DNA of 64,000 bases from Geosiphon pyriformis uo1. Its lineage: Eukaryota > Fungi > Glomeromycota. The stretch covers positions 358,912 to 422,911 of the forward strand of contig JAAOMT010000566.1 in assembly GCA_016748015.1 (NCBI GenBank). Direction: 5' to 3'. The notes beneath the pieces are model-generated. The model did not search any database and was not told the origin of the DNA. It worked only from the letters and a program-made list of their open reading frames with translations. Position numbers and translations under genes: made by a program. Of the stretch, positions 20,554 through 59,745 are shown piece by piece; position 1 is the first letter of the stretch, and each line of letters begins with the position of its first letter.

Positions 20554-21885
20554 TTATTTTGGGCATTTTCCCATCAAGTGTCCAAAGTATGGACCAAAAT
20601 GAGCCCTTTCTCCCTCAGTGGTTGTTTTAGCATTACATTGCTGAAAAAGAAAATTAGGTATTCCTATTAAAAGTCTGCTTTTTTGAAGTTTTTGCAGATG
20701 CTTGCTTACCGAGCTTTCAGTAGGAACTCCAAGAATAAGTGGGCCTTCACAAAGATATACAATTTGTTCCATTTCACTACAATCACAGTCTCCATCAATC
20801 CAAATTTCATAGGGAGTCTGAACTGTAGGACCGGGAAGCTTTGGCACAAAATCATCTGAATGCGTGATACGCCAAGATTCAAGTTTCTGCAACTTAATTA
20901 GGCTACCAATTTTTCTTGAGAATTCTAGATTTCCAATTGGTGGTTGCCCATATGTGAAAACATGGACTTTAAGATCTTTCAGTAGATGCCGAAAGCTGAG
21001 AGCTGAAAATAGTGCAAATACTGTGTGTAGAAAAAAACCCAAACATTATTTAATGTAGCATGTCAAAGATTTCTTGTTTTAGAGGTAGAGTAATAATTTT
21101 ATGAAAAATATTACCGCCACCTAAACCATGACCTGTGAATGTGATGGTGTTAAAACGTTGATAAATTTTGAGATTATTGGAGGCTGCCGTGATTAAATTT
21201 CGTAGAGCAACAACGCCACTCAAAAAAATGGTGAAATATGACTCTTCAACTTGAGCATCTGGCGCACCGTCAAAGTATGTCATGCGGTACATCATGTTTT
21301 TCCATTGTTCACGAGTTGGGACAGAGTTTCTTGATACTGTTGTCCGGTTAAAAACAAAACTTGTGCCTCGGAAATATATAATCAAATCTTTGCGAAAATG
21401 GTTTCTTTTGAGTATCTTAGCTTTAGCTTTCGTAATATATGGGAAATTAAGTTAATAAAATCGATTTATCTTTAGAGTTAAAAAAAATCTTTTGATTTAC
21501 CTAAAAATCCTGGGGTCATTTCATCTTGTAGGGTTAAACAGTATGCTAAACTAGAATAAGAGGCAAAATTTTTAAATTTATTTAGCATAACATAATCAGC
21601 AGGACCAAAAGGAACTTTCTGTCCCCTCCAATTTTGATTATAATTAATACTGATTGAATTTCTTTCTAGTTGTTTTGTGTTAGTATATCTTTTAGAAAGC
21701 TGGGATGAATTAGATAAAAGTAATGGTTCCAATAAATCTCCTTGTAATATTTTTATAGAATTTAGATTATTTTTATAAAGTTCATAAATTAATGAAAATT
21801 TTATCATAATCGTCATCATTATAATAATAATAATAATAATAATAATCATAATAATAATAATAATCAAGGATAGAAGTCTTTTCAT
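20554..21885 (-). CDS. Secreted class-3 lipase homologue with GHGLGG in place of GHSLGG. Exons 21885-21501, ~21426-21115, 21020-20710, 20640-20554
   Basis: Hydrophobic N-terminus; ASYSSLAYC; IIYFRGTS; TFTGHGLGGVFA; VFTYGQPPIGNLEF; RITHSDDFVPKLP; HFGPYFG...C. Three GT-AG introns with compatible phases; the exon 2 acceptor is one of two in-phase AGs 6 nt apart. Confidence 0.9.
21819..21864. repeat. (ATT)n microsatellite inside lipase exon 1, encoding poly-Ile
   Basis: Imperfect ATA/ATT trinucleotide run that reads IIIIIMIIIIIIIII on the minus strand. Confidence 0.9.
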
Positions 21886-27240: not shown

Positions 27241-28064
27241 CTATAAAAAATCTTCTTTTAAAACTCTTTCAGCTTCTCGTATGTCTCGCTCGGCCCGATT
27301 TAGGTATCTTTGCAAAACTTTGATCATGGTCTCATAGTAACGTCTCCGATAATGAGAAAGAAAATCTGATCCAATACAATCCTGTAAATAATAGCGATAA
27401 GCATGAATCAGAGTCATTAGACTGTGGAGCTTTGCCCGATGTTTCCACATGATTTTTTCTTCTGGATTCTGAAGAAGGAAATATTCCGATTCTGCATTTT
27501 CAATGTGAGGTAACCAATACAAAAAGATACCAAGGGGCCTTTCGATAAATGGAAGAAATTCCGTGAAATCCTGTCTTACACTTGAAAGATTACACTTTCT
27601 GTGTGAAAGAAAATTTGTCATTTTTTTCCCCTCCTTGACTGCAAGTAAAAGTTTCATGATAGAAGTAAACTCTTTTCAAATTTTACTTCTTACCGTATAA
27701 CGCTTTTATAAAAGCAAAACTCACAACAGCGTACATAAAATTCCCAAAATACTTTAACTGAGTCGGGGTCTTGTACGCGACAGAATTGACATCCTCGTTG
27801 TGTCATTGAAAGTTCTATATATGATTTTTCATTGAGTCCAGGGGGAATATCAAATTGAAGCAGCGGTAAAAATTGAAATCTTGACATTCTCCATATATGC
27901 TGGGTTGTGATTGACTCTTGGGAGCATAAAAATTCTCGAAATCTTCGACAAACTTGAGAAAGGGAAACCAGATCATCCGGAGTCAGATCCTTGCAAATTT
28001 CGATAAATATTTCAGGAGGAATTGCATTGACCAAAGATTTATTTAATGTATTGAATTTCTTCAT
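27241..28064 (-). CDS. F-box protein, 242 aa. Exons 28064-27694 and 27598-27241
   Basis: F-box IPPEIFIEICKDLTPDDLVSLSQVCRRFREFL, then IWRMSR and the Cys motif GCQFC...VFWEFYVRCCEFC. A 95-nt phase-2 GT-AG intron joins the two listed ORFs. Confidence 0.88.
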
Positions 28065-30645: not shown

Positions 30646-31473
30646 ATGGCCAAAGGAAAATTAGTTTTCAAAATTCTTCTCATATCCACTTTTCTTGCTT
30701 ATGCTTTTCTATTCACTTGCGTAGATGCGTTCCCAAAGGAAAAAAGTATGAGTTGATGTATTACTATTTTTGACAAATTTAAAAAGTTTCGAAATTTTTA
30801 CTTTTCTGATTATGTGTAAGAAAATATGCTAATTATATTTGGCATATTGTAAACATCACTATTAGGGTGCGTGAGCTGTTCTCAAACCGTTCGAGAATGC
30901 CCAGAGTGTGGTCCAGGACAGTATTGTAAGGTTATTAAAGGGGATTGTAACCATTGTTCATCGGCAACTTGTGAACGTCTAGCTGGAGATCACCCGACGA
31001 ACGATTCAGACGGTTTAATTTGTATACAACAAATTCCTCAATGTCCTACCTGTTTCCATGGTGAAGAATGTGTCAAGTCCCCGAAAACCGCTAATACCTG
31101 TCCTACTGCCACATGTCAAAAAATAAGGGGGAAACCAGGATACGATAGACCAGTTAGATATAACCAGAAAAATGAGCTTGATACTCCTACACTTGAGAAA
31201 CGTTTGATTTGTCCAGCCGTTGTACCAAAGTGTCCACCATGTGATGAAGACCAAGAGTGCGTAATTTTAAGAAAACCAGATGCTTGTCCCAAAGGAATCT
31301 GTCAGAAAAAAAACATCAAACCACCACCAGAAACTGGACCTTGCAAAATTCCTTTGAACTGCTTCTGGGCACCTAAATGTCAAAAAAATACTTGCCCGGA
31401 AGGACAGATATGCCAAGAGTTGCCACAAACATGCAAACAATGTGCTTCTACTTATTGCTCAACTCTTGCTTAA
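30646..31473 (+). CDS. Secreted Cys-rich protein with four Opy2-N-like modules and two KR sites. Exons 30646-30745 and 30866-31473
   Basis: Signal peptide MAKGKLVFKILLISTFLAYAFLFTCVDA, then FPKEKR|CVSC (the R codon spans a phase-1 GT-AG intron). Four modules with spacing like the Opy2 Cys-rich domain, e.g. CPEGQICQELPQTCKQCASTYC. LEKR precedes module 3. No transmembrane segment. Confidence 0.88.
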
Positions 31474-36364: not shown

Positions 36365-37261
36365 ATAAAATTTTTCATTTATTTATATTTGACTTATTAT
36401 TTTTGGCAAATTATTTTTATGTTTAATTTTTACAAAAACTTGACAAACTCTTAATATTTTGTAAAATTAACTAATTCATATTTAGAATAAATTAAACTAA
36501 ACGGTTGTAAATCAAAGGTTCGTGTGAATTAATTTTCAATTTCAGATTAATACAGATCTATTTAGAAATAAAAATGACATTGATCGAGGAAGATATCTTT
36601 GTCAAATGCTATCAAGGTATGGCTAGGATGCCACCTAAATGATTAAGAGATATTTCCACTCTGTTAACAGTTTCCGCTTTGTATAATCAGATTCAATTTT
36701 TTGGCTTATACCTCCCAGATTTTCTGTGTAAACACGCTGACTTTGAAATTCGGATGAAAAGACACAACTGAATCGACTTAACAACTCACCATTATTAAAG
36801 TTGATCTTTTGTTTGTTTGAATAGAAGCAATATTAACAATCGACTATTCTGGCCTTTTGATTTCACAGCAAGATAATTGCGAAAAGTTAAAACAAAGCTT
36901 AGTTTTAACGAATTGCTTTTACAAAAGATCTAATGCGGTTTATCTTCTCTTTATTGCGATTCAACTTAATTGATTTTGATAACTGATTTAAAACATTTTA
37001 TTATGAATTGATTGTAGGTTTCAACATGAACGTGAATTCGTATAATAATAAAATAGATGTTCTAATGCTAAGATTGATAATTCAAATTATTTACATTAAT
37101 ATGGGGAAATTCTAATATAGTGGCTTTTTAAGAGGGATTGAAAGACTAGTATATTTATCTCTGTAATTTTAATGACTCTTTAAAGTTAAATTTTCGGAAA
37201 TCAGACATTTTGTTGTTGACAACGAGATAAGTAAATGGATGCCTTGGAATATTACTCTTAC

Positions 37262-38044
37262 TTAAGCATTGAAACCTCCATTAATTGTACCAGCGGAGTT
37301 TTGACCATTTTGTTGGTTACCAATTGCATTGGAATTATATCCATTTCTACCACTATTGTCGTTGAACCCTCCGTTAATAGTACCCAGGGACCACTGGCCA
37401 TTTTGTTGATTACCAATAGCTCTCTTTACATTGAAACCACCATTAATAGTACCAGCGGAGTTTTGACCATTTTGTTGGTTACCAATTGAATTGGAATTAT
37501 ATCCATATCTACCACTATTGTCGTTGAACCCTCCGTTAATAGACCATTGGACCACTGGCCATTTTGTTGATTACCAATAGCTCTCTTTGCATTGAAACCT
37601 CCATTAATAGTACCAGCGGAGTTTTGACCATTTTGTTGGTTACCAATTGAATTGGAATTATATCCATATCTACCACTATTGTCGTTGAACCCTCCGTTAA
37701 TAAGACCATTGGACCACTGGCCATTTTGTTGATTACCAATAGCTCTCTTTACATTGAAACCTCCATTAATAGTACCCTGGGACCACTGACCATTTTGTTG
37801 GTTACCAATTGAATTGGAATTATATCCATATCTACCACTATTGTCGTTGAACCCTCCGTTAATAAAACCATTGGACCACTGGCCATTTTGTTGATTACCA
37901 ATAGCTCTCTTTACATTGAAACCTCCATTAATAGTACCCTGGGACCACTGACCATTTTGTTGGTTACCAATTGCATTGGAATTATATCCATATCTACCAC
38001 TATTGTCGTTGAACCCTCCGTTAATAAAACCATTGGACCACTGG
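37262..38044 (-). CDS. KEX2-type repeat precursor, copy L. 5' end lies in the N-gap; ~4.8 units visible; 1-bp deletion at ~37541 (pseudogene or assembly error)
   Basis: 162-bp units encoding AIGNQQNGQWSxGxINGGFNDNSGR[Y/N]GYNSN[S/A]IGNQQNGQ[WSQ/NSA]GTINGGFN[A/V]KR, with the same stop and 3' flank as copy R. The penultimate unit reads GGTCTATT where the neighbouring unit has GGTCTTATT. Confidence 0.88.
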
Positions 38045-38994
38045 NNNNNNNNNNNNNNNNNNNNNNNNNNNNNNNNNNNNNNNNNNNNNNNNNNNNNNNN
38101 NNNNNNNNNNNNNNNNNNNNNNNNNNNNNNNNNNNNNNNNNNNNNNNNNNNNNNNNNNNNNNNNNNNNNNNNNNNNNNNNNNNNNNNNNNNNNNNNNNNN
38201 NNNNNNNNNNNNNNNNNNNNNNNNNNNNNNNNNNNNNNNNNNNNNNNNNNNNNNNNNNNNNNNNNNNNNNNNNNNNNNNNNNNNNNNNNNNNNNNNNNNN
38301 NNNNNNNNNNNNNNNNNNNNNNNNNNNNNNNNNNNNNNNNNNNNNNNNNNNNNNNNNNNNNNNNNNNNNNNNNNNNNNNNNNNNNNNNNNNNNNNNNNNN
38401 NNNNNNNNNNNNNNNNNNNNNNNNNNNNNNNNNNNNNNNNNNNNNNNNNNNNNNNNNNNNNNNNNNNNNNNNNNNNNNNNNNNNNNNNNNNNNNNNNNNN
38501 NNNNNNNNNNNNNNNNNNNNNNNNNNNNNNNNNNNNNNNNNNNNNNNNNNNNNNNNNNNNNNNNNNNNNNNNNNNNNNNNNNNNNNNNNNNNNNNNNNNN
38601 NNNNNNNNNNNNNNNNNNNNNNNNNNNNNNNNNNNNNNNNNNNNNNNNNNNNNNNNNNNNNNNNNNNNNNNNNNNNNNNNNNNNNNNNNNNNNNNNNNNN
38701 NNNNNNNNNNNNNNNNNNNNNNNNNNNNNNNNNNNNNNNNNNNNNNNNNNNNNNNNNNNNNNNNNNNNNNNNNNNNNNNNNNNNNNNNNNNNNNNNNNNN
38801 NNNNNNNNNNNNNNNNNNNNNNNNNNNNNNNNNNNNNNNNNNNNNNNNNNNNNNNNNNNNNNNNNNNNNNNNNNNNNNNNNNNNNNNNNNNNNNNNNNNN
38901 NNNNNNNNNNNNNNNNNNNNNNNNNNNNNNNNNNNNNNNNNNNNNNNNNNNNNNNNNNNNNNNNNNNNNNNNNNNNNNNNNNNNNNNNNNNNNN
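38045..38994. other. Assembly gap (N run)
   Basis: Run of n characters. Confidence 1.
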
Positions 38995-39977
38995 CCGATA
39001 AATTCTGGTAAAATATGCATTTTAATTATATTTCTGCCTAATTTAACAACATGGCCTATTTAGTTAAAAAATCATACATAAGATAAGGTATAGCTATGAA
39101 TTCTTATAATTTTCTTTATGCTAGTTTCTCTTCGCTAATAAGCTTAAAATGGATTTAGCTTCTCATGTTACATTAATTGGGGAAAAAATGTCTTTGTTTT
39201 TTTTTCAAAATCGTTCACAAAGTTAAATAAACCATATATTATAAATAAAAGTATTCTAATTTCATTTATACTGTTATATTTCATATTAAATTTGCATACA
39301 AAGAATTCTTGCCTACTTAAGCACTAATTTGTTCGTAGAAAGAGATTAAACACAGCCTCTTGTGAATTGTAAATTTTTCTCATGCTATCAGATCTAATTT
39401 GAAGACTAATTTTTAAAAAAATATATTCAAGGCAATTCATTAACAGATATTAGAAAAGGGAAGTATAGAGTTTATTTTAATTAAAGAAAGATAATGGAAG
39501 GTTAAAAGATAAATCCCGCTTCTTAGGTTCGCCACAGAAGAATATTGTCATTAAATCGTCATTTGGGTTTTAAAAAAAGCAATGGCGCAATCATTCGAGT
39601 TGCAAAAAAGTTTAGGTTTCAATAAAATATTACGTTGTTCTTTTACGTGATGGTTTAAGCCGCACATTATTATTCCGATACTTTTGTTTTTTTCCAAAAG
39701 AAATATGACCTATTTAAATTTTGAAGAAGTAAATACATTAATGTTAATTTGAAGAAATCTCTATTATAGAGTATCAGAAATTAATGATTTATTCAAAGAC
39801 GAATTATTGATGTAAAGCTTTATGATCGGAAGACTGGGTCCCAATTTCAAATATAAGCCCATTCATTTTTTGGAAAAATTCAGTCGGCTGAAAAATTTTT
39901 AGATGTCAAAAACAGCTACTTACAAAAATTATTTACGTTTTAGAAACCCCTTGAATTGTTGTTTCTTTTATAACATA

Positions 39978-40120
39978 ATTTGGATAAGCCATATTTTTTT
40001 TTCATTTCTCTATGATGGCATCATGAAAGTACATATCTCAAAGCGTTTCAATGTTTCTCAATCTATCATTTGGATAAGCCATATTTTCTTTCATTCTTCT
40101 ATGATGACAGCATGAAAACC
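39978..40120 (+). repeat. Imperfect direct repeat, ~50-bp core with 90-bp period
   Basis: ATTTGGATAAGCCATATTTT.TTTCATT..CTATGATG.CA.CATGAAA starts at both 39978 and 40068. Confidence 0.8.
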
Positions 40121-41219
40121 GCATTAAAGTTTACAGCTTTTTGAAGCAAAAGTACATGTGAATATTTTTCAATCAATCATTCTATCAAGCATTAATTTGA
40201 TGGCTTAAAAGAAATCAAATAATTCCCTAATCTAAATTTAGTATTTCTTCATCGACAACCGAAAAGTCGTGGCTGGGATAATCAAAAATATCATCATAGG
40301 TGAAAAATCATTCGTGGCTAATCTGAATCAATTTCTATATTAATAATTTTGAATGATGTGATTTTACTAAATATAGTATATAGATTGTTTGAGGCATTTT
40401 AGTTCTAAATATAAATTGATTGTCCAATATTCTCGATCGCCTTATGATCCCACATAAACGCCACTGGCTAAAACATAATAGGAAACTGAAGAACTGTTTT
40501 ACTTGCAAAACAAAGATAGATATAATTAGTCTAATTTTTACCACAAAAGAAAGTCTCAATAGAGTTTTATTTTCTTTAAGCTTTTCATAGGAAATTATTG
40601 TAAGTAAGATTTCATGTAGGAGCATTATCAAATGCAATATGTTTTAGAAATATTTAAAATATCTATCCATAGATAAAAATATTATTCTATATAACCCTTC
40701 GAATATTTTTTAGTTTAATCTAATAATTGTTTCGCCAAGAAAGAATCAAATAGGCTCAAATCGATCACAGATTATTATCTATGATTTGATCATGTTTAAA
40801 TATATTGATAATTATTAAAAGTGATAGAATAACTCAGTGTTTAATGTTTCACTATCAAAATTTTGAATTAAAGATTCTCAAGTTATTAGTTTAAACAAGT
40901 TAGCTGGCTTATTAACCATCTTTTAAGGGTTCTGTCTATTGTGATGAGTAAAAACGAGCGCAACTTAAAAAAAAATCAATTTTTCAGCTCAAAGTAATTT
41001 CTAAATCATTATAAAGAGTAATAAAAACAGAAATTAATAATTTATTCTCCTTAAATCAAATTATACTCTATGTTCAAAAACTCGGAGGGTTAGAAGATGA
41101 GTGAAATAGCCACGTGATTTAAATTTTTTAGCAAAAATATGATAAATATTTTATTATTTAAAAATCGAGATAATCTGTAAAAATAGATTTCATCAAAAAA
41201 TTATCACATAATTAAAAAT

Positions 41220-42299
41220 CTAAAACGCTAACCACAAAACAACCGAAGCAAATAAAATCCCAGCTAACTTCAAACTTTCATAGATTTTTGAAATCTCAGC
41301 AACAGCAATGGAACTAAAATCGTTACTAGTATTATTGAACAAGGGATTAAATTTTACACCACATTGAGAGGTCAAATTTCCTTCAACTGGAGCCAAAGAT
41401 TGGGAGAATTCATGTCTCAAATTAGGGATGGTAAGAGGAGTCTGGGTATCCCAATCAACCCATATTTGAGTAATATCTTTGTAGTCTTCCCCGCAGAGAA
41501 TATCCTTTGGCACATTAACGACATGTTGAGTTTCATTATTTAATGATTGATAAGTTAGTTGGGCAGTTGGGGGATTGAAATCTTTTTTAAAGTCAGTCAG
41601 AAAACCGTCATGATCCTTGGGGAGATTTGATACGTAAACATTCGCTTGATTTAGTAGCTGGAGAAAGACATACTCTACAAAAAAAAAATAGTTTTGTGAG
41701 GCAAGATAGTCTAGATAGGTAAGTATAAGTAAAAAAAAATTTTATGAAAAAATGAAATAATTATTCTAACAAGTTTTTCTGTTCTTACCGTTATTATCAT
41801 TTTTGAGACAATATGCATTTCTTGTGGGGATTGAAGTATAAAATTCCAATAATATTCCTTTGAGAATTGAGCCAAAATTCTTATCCTTCGCTGACATAAT
41901 ATCTGATTTACAACCATCTTCAAGTTTTTGGACAGAAGTCGCTACGGCGTTCGAATCACAATTCTCTCCACAAAAACTATCAAATTGAGCCTGATAACTT
42001 GGATTAGCATTTGGATTAGGGTTATTTCTGATTCTATTCCTTGATAAGCATTTATTTATAGGATTAGGTGAAACTGAATAAATCGCTTTCTGACAATTGC
42101 TACAACTAGATACACCAAATTGTTTTTCGCATGACTTTGGTTTGTTGGAACCAGAAGTAAAACAAATCTTAAAATTGTCATTATAACAAAGCTCATTACT
42201 TTCGTTGAAATCTGGAGTGGCATCATTTCTTTGAATGAAAGTTGAAAGGGTTAAAAAAAAAAGTGGGATGAATATTTCCGTAATTTTAGTGATTTTCAT
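41220..42299 (-). CDS. Secreted 12-Cys protein with probable GPI-anchor signal, 321 aa. Exons 42299-41789 and 41674-41220
   Basis: Signal peptide MKITKITEIFIPLFFLTLSTFIQRNDA. A phase-1 GT-AG intron gives a continuous frame (...AYCLKNDNN-E-YVFLQLLNQ...VPKDILC...). C-terminus FSSIAVAEISKIYESLKLAGILFASVVLWLAF* has small residues, a spacer and a terminal hydrophobic tail. Confidence 0.85.
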
Positions 42300-43569
42300 G
42301 TTGAAAATTGAATTTTGAAATCAAGTAGTTTTTAAGGTCAGGGAAAAAGTTGAAATAAAAGCTTATTTATGGTCGTAAACTCATTAGAAAATCAAAAACA
42401 AATAGGAAAAAAAATTTCCTCTCATGAAAAGTGGAATTTATATTGATTCCTTTATTCTCCTGAAAAGGAATTTTTTTTGAAACAAGTAAACAATTAAAGA
42501 TTTCAAGTCTCAGCCTCCTTTATGATTCATGACCAAGCTTCATATGTTATTTTTATTTTCATTTTCAATGAGAAATCGTCATTTGGTTTTATTTTCTACT
42601 ACTAGTCAAGGCTTGGGACCATTCAATAAAAAATCTTTGGAAACCTTTGAATGATTCCTTTTGAACGAATCTTGCTTGCCTATTCTCAAAAAAGGATCTA
42701 ACTCATGATAAGGCTGCAAAATAAAGTATTACCACATGAAGATACGATCTATGACGTATCTTACTGAAATAAGATGTTTCATAACACTATAGCTTTGTGA
42801 AATCATAAACAAAACTACCTTTTCATTTGTTTTGATCTAGGACCTAAAGTTTCCATCCCAAAACCTATCTCCATCAAAAGATTTTGGGAAGAAATTCTCA
42901 AGGGATATCCTTTGATTTATTTTTCGTGAGAAAGGCTTGTAAATTTTTAATCTATTTTTAGGTATAATCAAAAGCCTGGTTGAAATTTTACAGCCTTAGT
43001 GAAACTGAGTGTTTTAGCATATCGTATAATTTTACCCTTTTATGTTATCAATACGAAGGACTTTTGCTTAATGTCGAAGAATCAGAATTGATAATAACAA
43101 AGCGCGGCAGATAAATAATTAAACCAAACAAGTTTAATAAGATTCCAACTTTTTTTCGGCTTTTTGCTTAGCAATTTCCCAAAAAAAACTGAAAGTAAAA
43201 ACATATATCTTTATTTTTTGAATAAAGCTTATTTCGACTAATAGCTTTGATTTTTCTTGGGCTTATGTCGCAATTGAAATACAATTCATGTGTTTAAGAT
43301 ATTAGAATACCAAAAGTTTACACCAAAGACTTAATAATCAACACATATGGTAACTCTCGTTATTCCAAAGTTGATTGTTCTTCAGTTTGATAGAATCATT
43401 ATTAAATATGTATCTTTGTTTTATATAACAAAAATTATAAATGTTTGCAAATTTAATATGAAATATAACAGTATAAATGAAATTAAAATACTTTTATTTA
43501 TAATATATGGTTTATTTAACTTTGTGAACGATTTTGAAAAAAAAACAAAGACATTTTTTCCCCAATTAA

Positions 43570-44151
43570 NNNNNNNNNNNNNNNNNNNNNNNNNNNNNNN
43601 NNNNNNNNNNNNNNNNNNNNNNNNNNNNNNNNNNNNNNNNNNNNNNNNNNNNNNNNNNNNNNNNNNNNNNNNNNNNNNNNNNNNNNNNNNNNNNNNNNNN
43701 NNNNNNNNNNNNNNNNNNNNNNNNNNNNNNNNNNNNNNNNNNNNNNNNNNNNNNNNNNNNNNNNNNNNNNNNNNNNNNNNNNNNNNNNNNNNNNNNNNNN
43801 NNNNNNNNNNNNNNNNNNNNNNNNNNNNNNNNNNNNNNNNNNNNNNNNNNNNNNNNNNNNNNNNNNNNNNNNNNNNNNNNNNNNNNNNNNNNNNNNNNNN
43901 NNNNNNNNNNNNNNNNNNNNNNNNNNNNNNNNNNNNNNNNNNNNNNNNNNNNNNNNNNNNNNNNNNNNNNNNNNNNNNNNNNNNNNNNNNNNNNNNNNNN
44001 NNNNNNNNNNNNNNNNNNNNNNNNNNNNNNNNNNNNNNNNNNNNNNNNNNNNNNNNNNNNNNNNNNNNNNNNNNNNNNNNNNNNNNNNNNNNNNNNNNNN
44101 NNNNNNNNNNNNNNNNNNNNNNNNNNNNNNNNNNNNNNNNNNNNNNNNNNN
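43570..44151. other. Assembly gap (N run)
   Basis: Run of n characters. Confidence 1.
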
Positions 44152-44241
44152 AAACATACCAAAGAATTACCGAAAAGGAAAATAGTCATGTTAAATTGAT
44201 TTTGTTTCAGAATCAAAACCATCATGAGAAAGAAAAAATGT

Positions 44242-44248
44242 TATAAAA
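44242..44248 (+). promoter_or_regulatory. Candidate TATA box of repeat precursor copy R
   Basis: TATAAAA 116 nt upstream of ATG 44358; a second TATAAAA at ~44323. Confidence 0.45.
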
Positions 44249-44357
44249 AGAGAAGAGGTTCGCCTGTTCAAAATCTCCTCATCCACACTCTAAAACATCA
44301 AAAAGAGTCTTTTCTATACATTTATAAAAAATCTCCAAAACACCAAGATTAATTAAA

Positions 44358-45428
44358 ATGCCTGCTAAATTTTTTATCACCCAAATTTGCACAGCTATCT
44401 TTCTCTTGTCTTCTCTTTCAGCATCTAATGCTGAACCAAATTTTTTCTCTAGCAAGAGAGCTATTGGTAATCAACAAAATGGCCATTGGTCTCAGGGTAC
44501 TATTAACGGAGGGTTTAACGACAATAGTGGTAGATATGGATATAATTCCAATTCAATCGGTAACCAACAAAATGGTCAGTGGTCCCAGGGTACTATTAAT
44601 GGAGGTTTCAACGCAAAGAGAGCTATTGGTAATCAACAAAATGGCCAGTGGTCCAATGGTTTTATTAACGGAGGGTTCAACGACAATAGTGGTAGAAATG
44701 GATATAATTCCAATTCAATTGGTAACCAACAAAATGGTCAGTGGTCCCAGGGTACTATTAATGGTGGTTTCAACGCAAAGAGAGCTATTGGTAATCAACA
44801 AAATGGCCAGTGGTCCAATGGTGTTATAAACGGAGGGTTCAACGACAATAGTGGTAGATATGGATATAATTCCAATGCAATTGGTAACCAACAAAATGGT
44901 CAAAACTCCGCTGGTACTATTAATGGTGGTTTCAATGCAAAGAGAGCTATTGGTAATCAACAAAATGGCCATTGGTCTCAGGGTACTATTAACGGAGGGT
45001 TCAACGACAATAGTGGTAGAAATGGATATAATTCCAATTCAATTGGTAACCAACAAAATGGTCAGTGGTCCCAGGGTACTATTAATGGTGGTTTCAATGC
45101 AAAGAGAGCTATTGGTAATCAACAAAATGGCCAGTGGTCCAATGGTGTTATAAACGGAGGGTTCAACGACAATAGTGGTAGATATGGATATAATTCCAAT
45201 TCAATCGGTAACCAACAAAATGGTCAAAACTCCGCTGGCACTATTAATGGTGGTTTCAATGCAAAGAGAGCTATTGGTAATCAACAAAATGGCCAGTGGT
45301 CTCAGGGTACTATTAACGGAGGGTTTAACGACAATAGTGGTAGAAATGGATATAATTCCAATGCAATTGGTAACCAACAAAATGGTCAAAACTCTGCTGG
45401 TACTATTAATGGTGGTTTCAATGCTTAA
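44358..45428 (+). CDS. KEX2-type repeat precursor, copy R: signal peptide, short pro-region, six 52-aa G/N/Q/S-rich peptides separated by KR (356 aa, intronless)
   Basis: MPAKFFITQICTAIFLLSSLSASNA-EPNFFSSKR, then 6 x 162-bp units; 34 + 5x54 + 52 = 356 aa. Every unit is preceded by KR; the last ends at the stop exactly where KR would be. AAAATG start context. Confidence 0.96.
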   Translation: MPAKFFITQICTAIFLLSSLSASNAEPNFFSSKRAIGNQQNGHWSQGTINGGFNDNSGRYGYNSNSIGNQQNGQWSQGTINGGFNAKRAIGNQQNGQWSNGFINGGFNDNSGRNGYNSNSIGNQQNGQWSQGTINGGFNAKRAIGNQQNGQWSNGVINGGFNDNSGRYGYNSNAIGNQQNGQNSAGTINGGFNAKRAIGNQQNGHWSQGTINGGFNDNSGRNGYNSNSIGNQQNGQWSQGTINGGFNAKRAIGNQQNGQWSNGVINGGFNDNSGRYGYNSNSIGNQQNGQNSAGTINGGFNAKRAIGNQQNGQWSQGTINGGFNDNSGRNGYNSNAIGNQQNGQNSAGTINGGFNA

Positions 45429-47689
45429 GTAAGAGTAATATTCCAAGGCATCCATTTGATTATCTCGTTGTCAACAACAAAATGTCCTATTTCTGAAAAT
45501 TTAACTTTAAAGAGTCATTAAAATTACAGAGATAAATATACTAGTCTTTCAATCCCTCTTAAAAAGCCACTATATTAGAATTTTCCGATATAAATGTAAA
45601 TAATTTGAATTATCAATCTTAGCATTAGAGCATCTATTTTATTATTATACGAATTCACGTTCATGTTGAAACATACAATCAATTCATAATAAAATGTTTT
45701 AAATCAGTTATCGAAATCATTCAAATTGAATTGCAATAAAGAGAAGATAAACCGCATTAGATCTTTTGTAAAAGCAATTCGTTAAAACTAAGCTTTGTTT
45801 TAACTCTTCAGAATTATCTTGCTGTGAAATCAAAAGGCCAGAATAGTCGATTGTTAATATTGCTTCTATTCAAAGAAACAAAAGATCAACTTTAATAATG
45901 GTGAGTTGTTCAGTCGATTCAGTTGTGTCTTTTCATCCGAATTTCAAAGTCAGCGTGTTTACACAGAAAATCTGGGAGGTATAAGCCAAAAAATTGAATC
46001 TGATTATACAAAGCGGAAACTGTTAACAGAGTGGAAATATCCCTTAAACATTTAGGTGGCATCCTAGCTATACCTTGATAGCATTTAACAAAGATTATCT
46101 TTATTAATCTGAAGTGCTACTCAAATTGACAATTAATTCACACCATGTGTTTGATTTACAACCGCTTAGTTTAATTTATTCTAAATAGCAACCAATTTAA
46201 TGATTAAGTTAATTAAATTAGCAACCAGAATAAAAATTAAGTTAATTAATATTATCTAAAGATAAAATGGATAATTATATAAAATAATGGTTAATATATG
46301 TAATAATCAATTAAAAATAAGATTTTAATTATAATATTATTCATGTTAAAGAAAGTAAACCTTTGCAAAATGAAACTATCTATAAGTAACGTTATCTGTA
46401 ATATGTTTTTAAATTGAAAATAAATAATCTAAAAAAGTCTAAATATATAAATTGTTTTTTTTAAGAATTTTATGTTTTTTATATAACAAGTTTTTATTAA
46501 TAAGTAGACTTTTTAAATGTTTTTCAATATTTTAAAGAACAATAGCATTATTGTTATTATGTATTTATTTATGTTAATTTTTATCAATTATTAAAGCTAT
46601 TATTACAACAAATAATTATTTAGATTATTTTTGATATTTATAATATTTCTTAAGTTTGATTCTATTAATTAATAATTTAAGTAACTAATAATTTTTAAAT
46701 TAAATAATAATTATAAACTTTTGTTTATATAATAGTAAAAAAAATAATCACTTTAAAAAATATTTTAAAAAATTAAAATTAATTAAAGCTTAATAAACTA
46801 ATAACCAAATTTGCCAAATAATTAAAAATATTTTTACAAATTGAAATAATAAACTAACAAATAACAAAGAAAATTTTAATTAAAAGGTAAATGAATGTGT
46901 ATAAATTCAATATATAAAATTAACTTTATAATTATCTTATTTGCTAATTTTTAAAAATAAAAAGATAGTTTGTATTGTTTACAAAAAATAATATAGCTAA
47001 TATAATTTTATGTCTTAATTAATGTTTTTAATGTTTAGTAATTGTTTTATTCAATAATACTTTTTAAAAACTAGCAGATACAATTTAAGAAAAAATTTTG
47101 TAATTTTTTAATCTTATATATTTAGATTGAAAGGTATAAAAAGAATTAAAGTATTAATTCTTAGATTGTTAGATTTAAAGAATAATTATAAAAATAGAAT
47201 AATTAAAATATATAATATCAATAATTAATAAATAGTTGAAATAATTATTGTTAGAAAAAAAAAATTAGAACTGAAATAATATTATTGTTCTTTTTCAAAA
47301 AAAAACTTATAAAATAAAAAATTATTAAAAAATAAACAATATTTGTCTAAAAACATTAGTTAAAACATAAAATTATTGCAGTTGTATTATCTTTGTTAAT
47401 AACTATAAACTATTTTTCAATTTCAAATTTTTTGAAAAATTAGTAACTATAATTTTAACTAATTACATTAATTAAATTACTTATTTATTTAATTTGCTTA
47501 GTTAAAAAATTTTTATTTATTTTATTGTTTTGTAATAATTATTAAAAAATAAATGATTAAAAAACTTAAATTCAAAAACAAAATATTTTACTTAAGATAA
47601 ATAATTATTTTTTTAATAAAAACATTTAAAACATGTTCAATATTTTTCACAATTATATATACAATTATTATTTTTATTTTTATTAATTA

Positions 47690-58000: not shown

Positions 58001-58155
58001 AGATCTAATGAGAAGTGTCGATTTACCGGGTCCCAGTTTTTCTAAAAATTAATTGGTCATCGGGGCTTTTATTCTTACCAGTGTAACCATCAAAAACATT
58101 TACGTTGATTTTAAATAGAAACAACAGGACTCCCACGCTATCTGTTCTGCTTAGA

Positions 58156-59745
58156 ATGTCTGTGATTTCTTTGCCAACGGAAACTCTGGTTGAAATATTT
58201 CAATATTTCCAGGATGATAATCATTCGCTCTTTTCTTGCTTAAAAGTAAACCGATTATTTGCGCGAAATAGTGTTTCCATTTTATGGAAATTCCCGTTTA
58301 AACGCTTCAAAAATGTAAAATCTCATAAGTCTGTTGTTCGAGCACTCCTTTCTTCCATGGATGATACAGAGAAACATGAACGACTTGGCAATATTTCAAA
58401 CGATTTATTGAATGACCTTCCAAAAGCTATTTTCGATTACACGACCTTTATTGCTGAACTAGACGTTGCCAATTTATCAGAAAGCGTTACCGAATGGTAT
58501 CTTGGAACACGTCAAAAAGATAAACGTGTTGATTGGCAACATGCTAATATTCAAAAAGCCGTCACTGAACTTTGTCGAACTGTTTTAATATCGTCAAACT
58601 GCCTGATTAGTCTCAAATTATCCGCTCAAACTTCCTTTGTTGTCTTGCCGCATTTCGCCAATTTCCTATATGATCGACCATTGAATTTAAAAAATTTGGA
58701 AATCTTACGAATTGAAAAACATATGTCCGGGAAATTGGAAAACGCTTTAGAAATTTTTCCTTTACTGACACGTCATTGTCAACATTTGAGCTTGCTATCA
58801 GTAATGTTCGATTTCAATTATCCCTCAATGATCGATCAAGTCGCTTCTATAATCAAAAATCAATTATACCTTCAAACAGTTCTGATTAAAAACATGGAAA
58901 CAGGCTGGGCACCACTTGTATCAGCTTTATCAACCCAACATAAATCTTTAAGGAGAATCGAATTTCATTCATGTGATTTGGATGAACTTCCAGTTAAAGA
59001 CATATCCTCATTCAATAACTTGAATACACTGGTGTTTATTAATTCTTCCAAAAATCGATCATCAAGCCAACTTTGGACGCCCCTCATGAATGCCAATATC
59101 AAAATTGAGAAACTTTTTTTCAGCTTCGACATTACCATAGGCTTTGAATTGGAAATTTCGCCCATCATTCAAAAAGCTGGAAAATATTTGCTCGATTTGG
59201 TTTTGCCTGAAAATTGTGAACCTCAAATTTTCAATTATGTTCGGTTCTCGTGTCCTAATCTGCAAAAACTTTCAGTAATTCTTGATAAACTCGATGGTGA
59301 GCGGTATAGATCAGCTCTTGGACTTTTTGCTAACTGTGGAAATCTCAAAGAATTATCATTAAACTATATCAGTGACAATAAGCAAATTCAATATTCTGAA
59401 CATTGGTGTCAACTAGCCAGAATTTTACCAGCAAGTTTGACTGGCATCAATTTTGGGATCGAAATCAACGCAAATGATTTATCTAATTTTTTCGCCAACT
59501 CAAGTTTGCCCAAATTACGAAAAATTGGGTTTTCTTGTGGTGTTCGATACGTTTCAAACCTAATACCTGCCATTATTTCTTTTGCGGAAATTAATCAATG
59601 TCAAATCGAAGTTGGGATCAAACATCGAAATTTTGATTTCTCAGATTTGCCTCAGTATTTATCGCAAAAAGCTGAAGGAAGAATCAAGCCGTTTAGTAAT
59701 ATATGGTTTGATAATTATGGCGAATACGATGTGGCTGAATTTTGA
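58156..59745 (+). CDS. F-box / RNI-like leucine-rich-repeat protein, 529 aa, single exon
   Basis: LPTETLVEIFQYF...SLFSCLKVNRLF...VSILWKFPF F-box, FDYTTFIAELD motif, and repeated LxxLxL segments (LKNLEILRI, CQHLSLLSV, CPNLQKLSV, NLKELSL). First ATG is at 58156 within the listed TTG ORF. Confidence 0.92.
   Translation: MSVISLPTETLVEIFQYFQDDNHSLFSCLKVNRLFARNSVSILWKFPFKRFKNVKSHKSVVRALLSSMDDTEKHERLGNISNDLLNDLPKAIFDYTTFIAELDVANLSESVTEWYLGTRQKDKRVDWQHANIQKAVTELCRTVLISSNCLISLKLSAQTSFVVLPHFANFLYDRPLNLKNLEILRIEKHMSGKLENALEIFPLLTRHCQHLSLLSVMFDFNYPSMIDQVASIIKNQLYLQTVLIKNMETGWAPLVSALSTQHKSLRRIEFHSCDLDELPVKDISSFNNLNTLVFINSSKNRSSSQLWTPLMNANIKIEKLFFSFDITIGFELEISPIIQKAGKYLLDLVLPENCEPQIFNYVRFSCPNLQKLSVILDKLDGERYRSALGLFANCGNLKELSLNYISDNKQIQYSEHWCQLARILPASLTGINFGIEINANDLSNFFANSSLPKLRKIGFSCGVRYVSNLIPAIISFAEINQCQIEVGIKHRNFDFSDLPQYLSQKAEGRIKPFSNIWFDNYGEYDVAEF

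Follow-up and report, generated by a model that had tools for sequence, protein, structure and literature searches.

KEX2-processed repeat proteins (KEPs) are widespread in fungi, and almost none of them has a known function. They are defined by a signal peptide, at least three repeats, Lys-Arg (KR) or Arg-Arg (RR) dipeptides between the repeats, and no transmembrane (TM) segment, and they abound in large-genome fungi from early-diverging lineages, Rhizophagus irregularis being one example (PMC6339444). The Rhizophagus SP7 family (Kamel et al. 2017, PMC5293756) likewise comprises secreted arbuscular mycorrhizal fungal repeat proteins with a conserved [KR]R motif at the repeat borders, and these have been proposed as a source of peptides. 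Rep1 of Ustilago maydis is so far the only KEP precedent for the export of self-assembling material; this pre-pro-protein is cut at Kex2 sites into peptides of 34-53 amino acids (aa) that form wall amyloid (PMC3133707). The current study concerns a gene within a 64,000-nucleotide (nt) stretch of the Geosiphon pyriformis uo1 genome (contig JAAOMT010000566.1, positions 358,912 to 422,911, forward strand; hereafter, the window), which is probably a KEP gene of a new family within this known class. The family has multiple copies in the genome, is expressed, and evolves under purifying selection. Like the KEPs cataloged by Le Marquer et al. (2019, PMC6339444), its product combines a signal peptide, at least three near-identical repeats, KR dipeptides, and the lack of a TM segment with the presence of a kexin in the same genome. 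It differs from the cataloged KEPs in that its sequence is unrelated to theirs, it carries no STE13 signature, and its repeat unit is itself an internal duplication. Its repeat sequence is also unrelated to that of the SP7 family, and a link to symbiosis is only conjectural here; the role as a symbiosis matrix offered in the initial annotation of this DNA is speculation.

The gene corresponds to the open reading frame (ORF) at 44358..45428 on the + strand, the longest uninterrupted ORF free of undetermined bases (N) within 43.5-46.5 kb of the window. Its G+C content is 39%, versus 23.5% for the window as a whole, and a 1071-nt open frame at 23.5% G+C, together with purifying selection and cDNA support, places the ORF far beyond chance. 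The precursor contains all of the defining KEP features: a predicted signal peptide, six repeats, KR sites, and no TM or other hydrophobic stretch in the mature region. The predicted signal peptide has an n-region that includes Lys4, followed by a hydrophobic core spanning residues 5-20, where 11-residue Kyte-Doolittle means reach 2.3; the residues at positions -3 to -1 are S-N-A. All paralogues conserve this segment, and AlphaFold2 (AF2) places a helix at residues 3-17, inside the signal peptide. Beyond a short propeptide lie units of 54, 54, 54, 54, 54, and 52 aa, with KR closing units 1-5 and Ala closing unit 6. Each mature 52-mer consists of a 20-aa core, an 11-aa linker (DNSGR[Y/N]GYNSN), a second 20-aa core, and Ala, and the consensus of the gene's twelve cores is xIGNQQNGxxSxGxINGGFN (Table 1). 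The initial annotation had described a signal peptide followed by six KR-preceded units of this 20 + 11 + 20 + Ala layout, all of which is borne out by translation, and its amino acid counts for unit 1 are exact (12 Gly, 11 Asn, 7 Gln, and 5 Ser, or 35 of 52 residues; one Asp and one Arg, hence a net charge of 0; no Pro or Cys). Across the 322 mature residues there is no Pro, Cys, Glu, Leu, or Met, Gln plus Asn account for 36% and Gly for 22%, and up to 31 Gln/Asn residues occur per 80 aa. Tandem Repeats Finder reports a period of 162 nt in 6.0 copies (91% matches, score 1564) as well as a super-period of 486 nt in 2.0 copies (94% matches), so the present gene arose in part when a block of three units was duplicated. 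Further ORFs over the array, read on the opposite strand or in alternative frames (44428-44829, 44715-44972, and others), were set aside as by-products of the repeat. The absence of N-x-S/T sequons, which had also been pointed out, holds for all 356 aa, whereas 8.6 ± 2.4 would be expected from a shuffled mature region. However, since the units are copies of one another, a per-unit test is fairer and yields P(0) = 0.17, and the linker of one paralogue sequence (L004/L005) does carry the sequon N-N-S. Sequon avoidance in the precursor is therefore only suggestive, as it is not significant per independent unit.

Several features of the precursor point to proteolytic release of its units. KR is found after the propeptide and after units 1-5, and the dibasic site is conserved in all paralogues, with RR occurring once (at the end of the propeptide of the minimal member, L010). 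While the residue preceding KR varies (Ala, Val, Asp, Asn, Thr, Gly, or Glu), KR itself is invariant, and its codons vary synonymously (AAG/AAA and AGA/AGG). Lys is confined to KR within the mature part, and unit 6, which has no KR, meets its stop codon directly after the Ala where the other units would end once their KR is removed. The dipeptides following KR are never X-Ala or X-Pro, the units starting with AIGN, SIGN, or GIGN, so no Ste13 step would be expected. The genome also encodes a kexin, whose domain architecture is listed in Table 1. From these features, we infer signal peptide cleavage, KR cleavage, and KR trimming. The 356-aa prepro-protein would enter the endoplasmic reticulum via its signal peptide, the genome's kexin would cut after each of the six KR sites in the late Golgi, and a Kex1-type carboxypeptidase would remove the C-terminal KR, such that six near-identical uncharged 52-aa peptides, all ending in ...GGFNA, would be secreted. 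Two points weigh against this pathway: yeast Kex2 prefers an aliphatic residue at P4, where the sites here have Asn or Phe, and no cleavage product has been observed. The proposal of a secreted Kex2-type polyprotein is nonetheless well supported, if not proven, by the signal peptide, the repeats, the invariant dibasic sites, the kexin gene, and cDNA.

It is also conceivable that the precursor is left uncut, or is only partly cut, and serves, either secreted or bound to the wall, as an intact beta-solenoid with about 12 rungs and with KR located in the inter-rung turns, acting as an adhesin, a surface coat, or an ice- or crystal-binding-like protein. The AF2 models of both the precursor and the 250-aa paralogue L002 are continuous beta-helices, and their structural neighbors include bacterial beta-helix adhesins and an antifreeze protein, which speaks in favor of this scenario. 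We nevertheless consider it unlikely for several reasons: 1) the short propeptide ends in a conserved dibasic site, ahead of the first rung, which persists as RR in L010, 2) Lys is found solely within KR, 3) the last unit stops exactly at the processed terminus, 4) the precursor has neither a glycosylphosphatidylinositol signal nor a wall-anchoring tail, and 5) AF2 is known to be biased toward solenoids when given repeats (PMC11795689).

The gene is expressed as an unspliced mRNA starting at 44281. In the sole public run covering the stretch (X1), contigs are confined to 44281-45499 and the depth is 0 before 44235 and after 45510; both the next 900 nt downstream and the 120 nt of readable sequence upstream are free of contigs, and no splice joints are reported. 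The contig starting at 44281 bears an unaligned 5' extension ending in GGGG, which we take to be a SMART-type template-switching cDNA oligo, with its SfiI site and terminal G run. Given this adaptor, position 44281 can be read as the 5' end of a capped mRNA, and the adaptor together with the transcript-shaped coverage leads us to infer that the run is cDNA; against this stands its label, "RNA? (probably DNA)". The contigs at the 5' end (44281-44483) and at the 3' end (45414-45499) both match this copy of the gene with 0 mismatches, and the nearby inverted twin described below differs in the 3' untranslated region (UTR). The array is spanned by no single contig, and the contigs cannot rank expression. 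Lack of a transcript had been named beforehand as an outcome that would refute the proposal; the cDNA contigs at 44281-45499 show that the gene is transcribed. A TATA-like box 32-39 nt upstream of the mapped 5' end presumably belongs to the promoter (Table 1). An N run at 43570-44151 lies 206 nt upstream of the ATG, which leaves the promoter beyond 44152 unreadable.

A six-frame search of the organism's own 128-Mb genome returned 13 matches, which represent about eight paralogous copies, with the further matches being family fragments. An inverted twin lies 6.3 kb from the gene; its frame is broken by a 1-nt deletion near 37541-37542 and its 5' part enters an N run at 38045-38994, which makes it a pseudogene or else an artifact of the assembly. 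A comparable ambiguity applies to L007/L008, which is either a frameshifted pseudogene or the result of a homopolymer assembly error. L004 and L005, which lie on separate contigs, share the same DNA sequence over 726 nt; this reflects a segmental duplication of very recent date or a haplotig that was not collapsed. The paralogues have an architecture distinct from that of the gene at 44358..45428: they begin with one double unit (core-linker-core) and continue with single cores, six to seven in number, that each precede x-K-R and would thus be released as 21-aa peptides. Aligned with the later paralogue units, the present gene has its 11-aa linker exactly where they have x-K-R. To judge from these sequences, the 52-aa two-repeat unit is peculiar to the present gene and its twin. 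As the paralogues mostly release single cores, it is the 20-aa core, rather than the 52-mer, that is the conserved module; it would be the functional element as well, supplied as a tethered pair by the present gene and mostly as a single 21-aa peptide by its paralogues.

Purifying selection acts on the peptide core and the dibasic sites. When the two cores within one unit are compared, the proportion of synonymous differences (pS) is 0.50-0.86, which is near saturation, while that of nonsynonymous differences (pN) is 0.04-0.17, for a pN/pS ratio of 0.06-0.21. Among the units of the gene, pN/pS is 0.39, and comparison of its first unit with those of three paralogues gives a ratio of nonsynonymous to synonymous substitution rates (dN/dS) of 0.14-0.34 at dS values of 0.56-1.0. 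The low pN relative to pS in the half-repeats and the paralogue dN/dS both support a coding function. Within the core, the Gly/Asn turn residues as well as Ile, Ile, and Phe are invariant, whereas positions 8, 9, 11, and 13 vary.

The peptides may instead be diffusible signals, either pheromone-like or directed at a host or microbe, in which case the precursor would be processed in the same manner and the core would act as the ligand. Strong purifying selection across nearly the whole core would be in keeping with this role, the variable core positions could tune specificity, and most characterized or proposed KEP products are signaling peptides of the alpha-factor type, whose modal size of 9-24 aa fits the 21-aa peptides of the paralogues (PMC6339444). 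The 52-aa peptide of the present gene is outside of this size range, and, with its duplicated core, is large for a pheromone. It also lacks the STE13 dipeptides of alpha-factor-type precursors, its units starting with AI, SI, or GI after KR. Moreover, an uncharged, Pro-free composition rich in Gln, Asn, and Gly is atypical of known fungal peptide ligands, and the many units spread over about eight gene copies suggest bulk production. On balance, we regard a signaling role as a realistic, if doubtful, option.

With regard to sequence, the family matches no characterized family, and the initial annotation had not recognized one either. The only families listed for the precursor by a Pfam scan at E <= 10 were two unrelated ones that stayed below threshold, and neither NCBIfam nor the PDB sequences contained a match to it. 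A word search of about 5.8 billion protein clusters, performed with both the protein and the family alignment, yielded no homologue, nor did two metagenome scans for the family. The exhaustive HMMER/phmmer search of 1.84 billion representative proteins (E <= 0.001) found no homologue except for one marginal match, an animal sushi/C-type-lectin repeat protein, which was rejected as a chance repeat match. The best value in an ESM Atlas feature search was 0.76, which is not meaningful, and the core motif strings were found neither in the literature searched nor in the KEP catalog supplements (PMC6339444). The exact sequences of the precursor and of the L002 paralogue are themselves absent from the protein collection, whereas a neighboring F-box ORF of the same genome (58156-59742) is present in it. 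The family therefore seems to have been skipped by gene prediction when the genome was annotated. Since it was missed even in its own genome's annotation, its absence elsewhere is weak evidence, and lineage-specificity is not established. More generally, the family points to a gene-calling blind spot for repeat-rich precursors of small peptides.

A further idea is that the gene encodes the precursor of a ribosomally synthesized and post-translationally modified peptide (RiPP) of the dikaritin/ust-RiPS type, with its cores altered by tailoring enzymes. A signal peptide combined with KR-flanked repeats is common to the ustiloxin and phomopsin precursors (PMC6339444), and this resemblance is what the idea draws upon. 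Among ORFs of at least 90 aa in the 26-60 kb portion of the window, plus three ORFs nearer the window start, there is no UstYa (DUF3328), tyrosinase, or other tailoring domain; a genome-wide UstYa search was blank as well, although its control was silent too. Furthermore, the core has neither a conserved Tyr nor an EDYxI-like motif, and at 20-52 aa it far exceeds dikaritin cores. A modified peptide of this sort is highly improbable here.

The family can also be compared with known amyloids. The initial annotation had cited Rep1 as a precedent for amyloid-forming peptides of similar size, and this is accurate, given the 34-53 aa and the wall amyloid reported for it (PMC3133707). Rep1 shares with the present gene a Kex2-type precursor and a peptide size similar to that of the 52-mers. 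There is, however, no detectable sequence similarity between them (assuming that Rep1 is present in the libraries searched), and the repellents are amphipathic and render surfaces hydrophobic, whereas the peptides here are hydrophilic and rich in Gln, Asn, and Gly. HET-s(218-289) resembles the 52-mer in having two pseudo-repeats of about 20 aa connected by a flexible loop and in being rich in Asn, Gly, and Gln. Unlike the secreted precursor examined here, HET-s and the related fungal amyloid signaling motifs are cytoplasmic, and the HET-s_218-289 family (PF11558) gave no match in the Pfam scan at E <= 10. The proposed likeness to HET-s and to the Sup35 segment GNNQQNY thus stands at the level of composition and architecture and does not extend to family membership. 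The view of the 52-mer as a HET-s-like functional entity is weakened: the two-repeat layout is found in all six units of this gene, but the paralogues keep it once, in their first unit, and it is the 20-mer that is conserved. Bacterial curli CsgA presents a different set of parallels, as an extracellular protein whose strand-turn-strand repeats measure about 20-23 aa, have a high content of Gly, Asn, Gln, and Ser, and stack into a beta-solenoid. In this case, the distinctions are the eukaryotic host, rungs that would be proteolytically released rather than covalently linked, and the lack of known nucleator or secretion partners; the curlin repeat (Curlin_rpt, PF07012) was likewise without a match in the Pfam scan at E <= 10.

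We tentatively favor self-association of the peptides into extracellular or wall material rich in beta structure, each core contributing one strand-turn-strand rung, as the single most likely, though still doubtful, role. This is suggested by several observations: 1) the composition is prion-like, being Gln/Asn- and Gly-rich, Pro-free, and uncharged, 2) the core holds constant its turn-type Gly/Asn residues along with three or four hydrophobic positions, 3) the core tolerates release either singly or as a tethered pair, and 4) Rep1 offers a precedent for wall amyloid made of Kex2-released peptides (PMC3133707). Single-sequence AF2 prediction of the precursor gave a beta-helix-like stack, its best model having a predicted local distance difference test (pLDDT) score of 62 and a predicted TM-score (pTM) of 0.59; each core is modeled as a strand, an N-G turn, a strand, and a G-G turn, and the linkers are low-confidence loops. 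For L002, the best model reached 75.6 with a pTM of 0.73 and the same beta-helix rungs, while the others scored about 50. The best structural neighbors, too, are beta-helix proteins. A more specific version, in which the 20-aa core is the rung of an extracellular cross-beta polymer, either curli-like or a beta-solenoid, built from Kex2-freed peptides, is in our opinion quite doubtful. According to this version, Golgi cleavage would convert a soluble tandem precursor into polymer-competent monomers, and the 21-aa single-core and 52-aa double-core genes would supply different building blocks. If true, this would represent a eukaryotic functional amyloid with a prion-like composition and a multigene family overlooked by annotation pipelines.

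There are also several points that weigh against self-assembly. The case for it rests on composition and the AF2 models, and the other four models of the precursor score only about 34-55. AF2 is furthermore known to yield unrealistic beta-solenoids for near-perfect repeats (PMC11795689), and a Foldseek search of the PDB found no significant match to the AF2 model. The peptides are hydrophilic and not amphipathic like the repellents. The structural neighbors retrieved by VIA-align are all beta-helix proteins with Z scores of 16-20 (EtpA at 20.0, Vag8 at 19.6, and the antifreeze protein MpAFP at 18.2, with pertactin also among them); these and the Atlas shape neighbors are only generic beta-helices and carry no functional information. 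Prediction of a four-copy complex of the 52-mer scored 0.01 and speaks neither for nor against self-association. We read the models as indicating no more than that a strand-turn-strand rung would suit the core. Both the 52-aa and the 21-aa peptides are short enough to synthesize, making self-assembly directly testable.

The same composition bears upon one further function, namely that of Gly-rich defense or antimicrobial peptides directed against competing microbes. Gly-rich antimicrobial polyprotein precursors exist in both plants and insects. The peptides described here have a net charge of 0, with one Asp and one Arg per 52 aa, and are neither amphipathic nor cationic. Even though a role in biotic interactions has been proposed for KEP peptides (PMC9769878), we find an antimicrobial function very unlikely for this family.

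Table 1. Positions of the precursor gene, its parts, its relatives, and associated features (window coordinates unless a contig is named; empty cells, no entry).
Feature	Position	Strand	Remarks
Coding sequence (CDS)	44358..45428	+	356-aa precursor; stop codon 45426-45428; from ORF translation; family member
Predicted signal peptide	44358..44432	+	residues 1-25; predicted cut after S-N-A; inspection and hydropathy
Propeptide EPNFFSSKR	44433..44459	+	residues 26-34; first dibasic site at its end
Six-unit array	44460..45425	+	162 nt each (last 156 nt); Tandem Repeats Finder and unit split
Unit starts	44460, 44622, 44784, 44946, 45108, 45270	+	
Unit 1, first 20-aa core	44460..44519	+	
Unit 1, 11-aa linker DNSGRYGYNSN	44520..44552	+	low pLDDT in AF2 model
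Unit 1, second 20-aa core, Ala, and KR site	44553..44621	+	KR site at 44616-44621
Transcribed region	44281..45499	+	77-nt 5' UTR, CDS, and ~71-nt 3' UTR; run X1 contigs; no intron seen
TATA-like box TATAAAAA	44242..44249	+	32-39 nt upstream of mapped mRNA 5' end; from sequence; putative promoter function
Inverted twin	37262..38044	-	~4.8 units and stop codon; 6.3 kb from the gene; V-K-R boundaries
Outer left inverted arm	36595..37541	.	947 nt, 96% complementary to 45149-46095; includes the gene's 3' portion plus 670 nt of flanking DNA downstream
Inner arms	39173-39300 and 43442-43569		98% complementary; palindromic locus 36595-46095
Cluster of three copies	C549:58.7-62.5 kb		one frameshifted
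Paralogue L007/L008	C549:58754-59847		array shifts frame after four units
Paralogue L002	C549:76960		250 aa
Paralogue L004	C727:169198-169923		242 aa
Paralogue L005	C549:60936-61661		242 aa
Paralogue L010	C778:100820-101074		minimal 92-aa member: signal peptide, RR-ended propeptide, one double unit, KR, and 6-aa tail HYKYIY
Kexin gene (L013, L015)	G000:C608, ~603.8-606.1 kb		S8 domain, P_proprotein domain, Ser/Thr-rich stalk, TM helix, and acidic cytoplasmic tail

When examining the surroundings of the gene, it is evident that it lies in one arm of a large inverted repeat, from which the gene and its twin are transcribed away from each other. The unique center between the arms contains a 177-aa ORF (41766-42299, -) with a signal-peptide-like start, many Cys residues, and no Pfam match. 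Elsewhere in the window, the ORFs at 27690-28064 (-), 58105-59745 (+), 30871-31473 (+), and 20554-21042 (-) comprise two F-box-like ORFs, an ORF with four Opy2 repeats, and a class-3 lipase fragment. As for the rest of the genome, the Opy2-domain ORF and the architecture of the kexin mark it as fungal, while a CBM_10 search meant to reveal an anaerobic gut fungus was blank, with a control that was silent as well. L016 and L017 each hold a confirmed full-length 18S rRNA gene, and the difference in their Rfam scores (1818 versus 1602 bits) suggests heterogeneous rDNA. A glomeromycete 18S primer matches the genome with 1 mismatch at three sites, which hints at a glomeromycete and makes an arbuscular mycorrhizal fungus likely. 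These 18S sites, at C658:1097510, C659:987052, and C659:1045481, are few and dispersed rather than tandem, with the C659 pair located 58 kb apart in opposite orientation.

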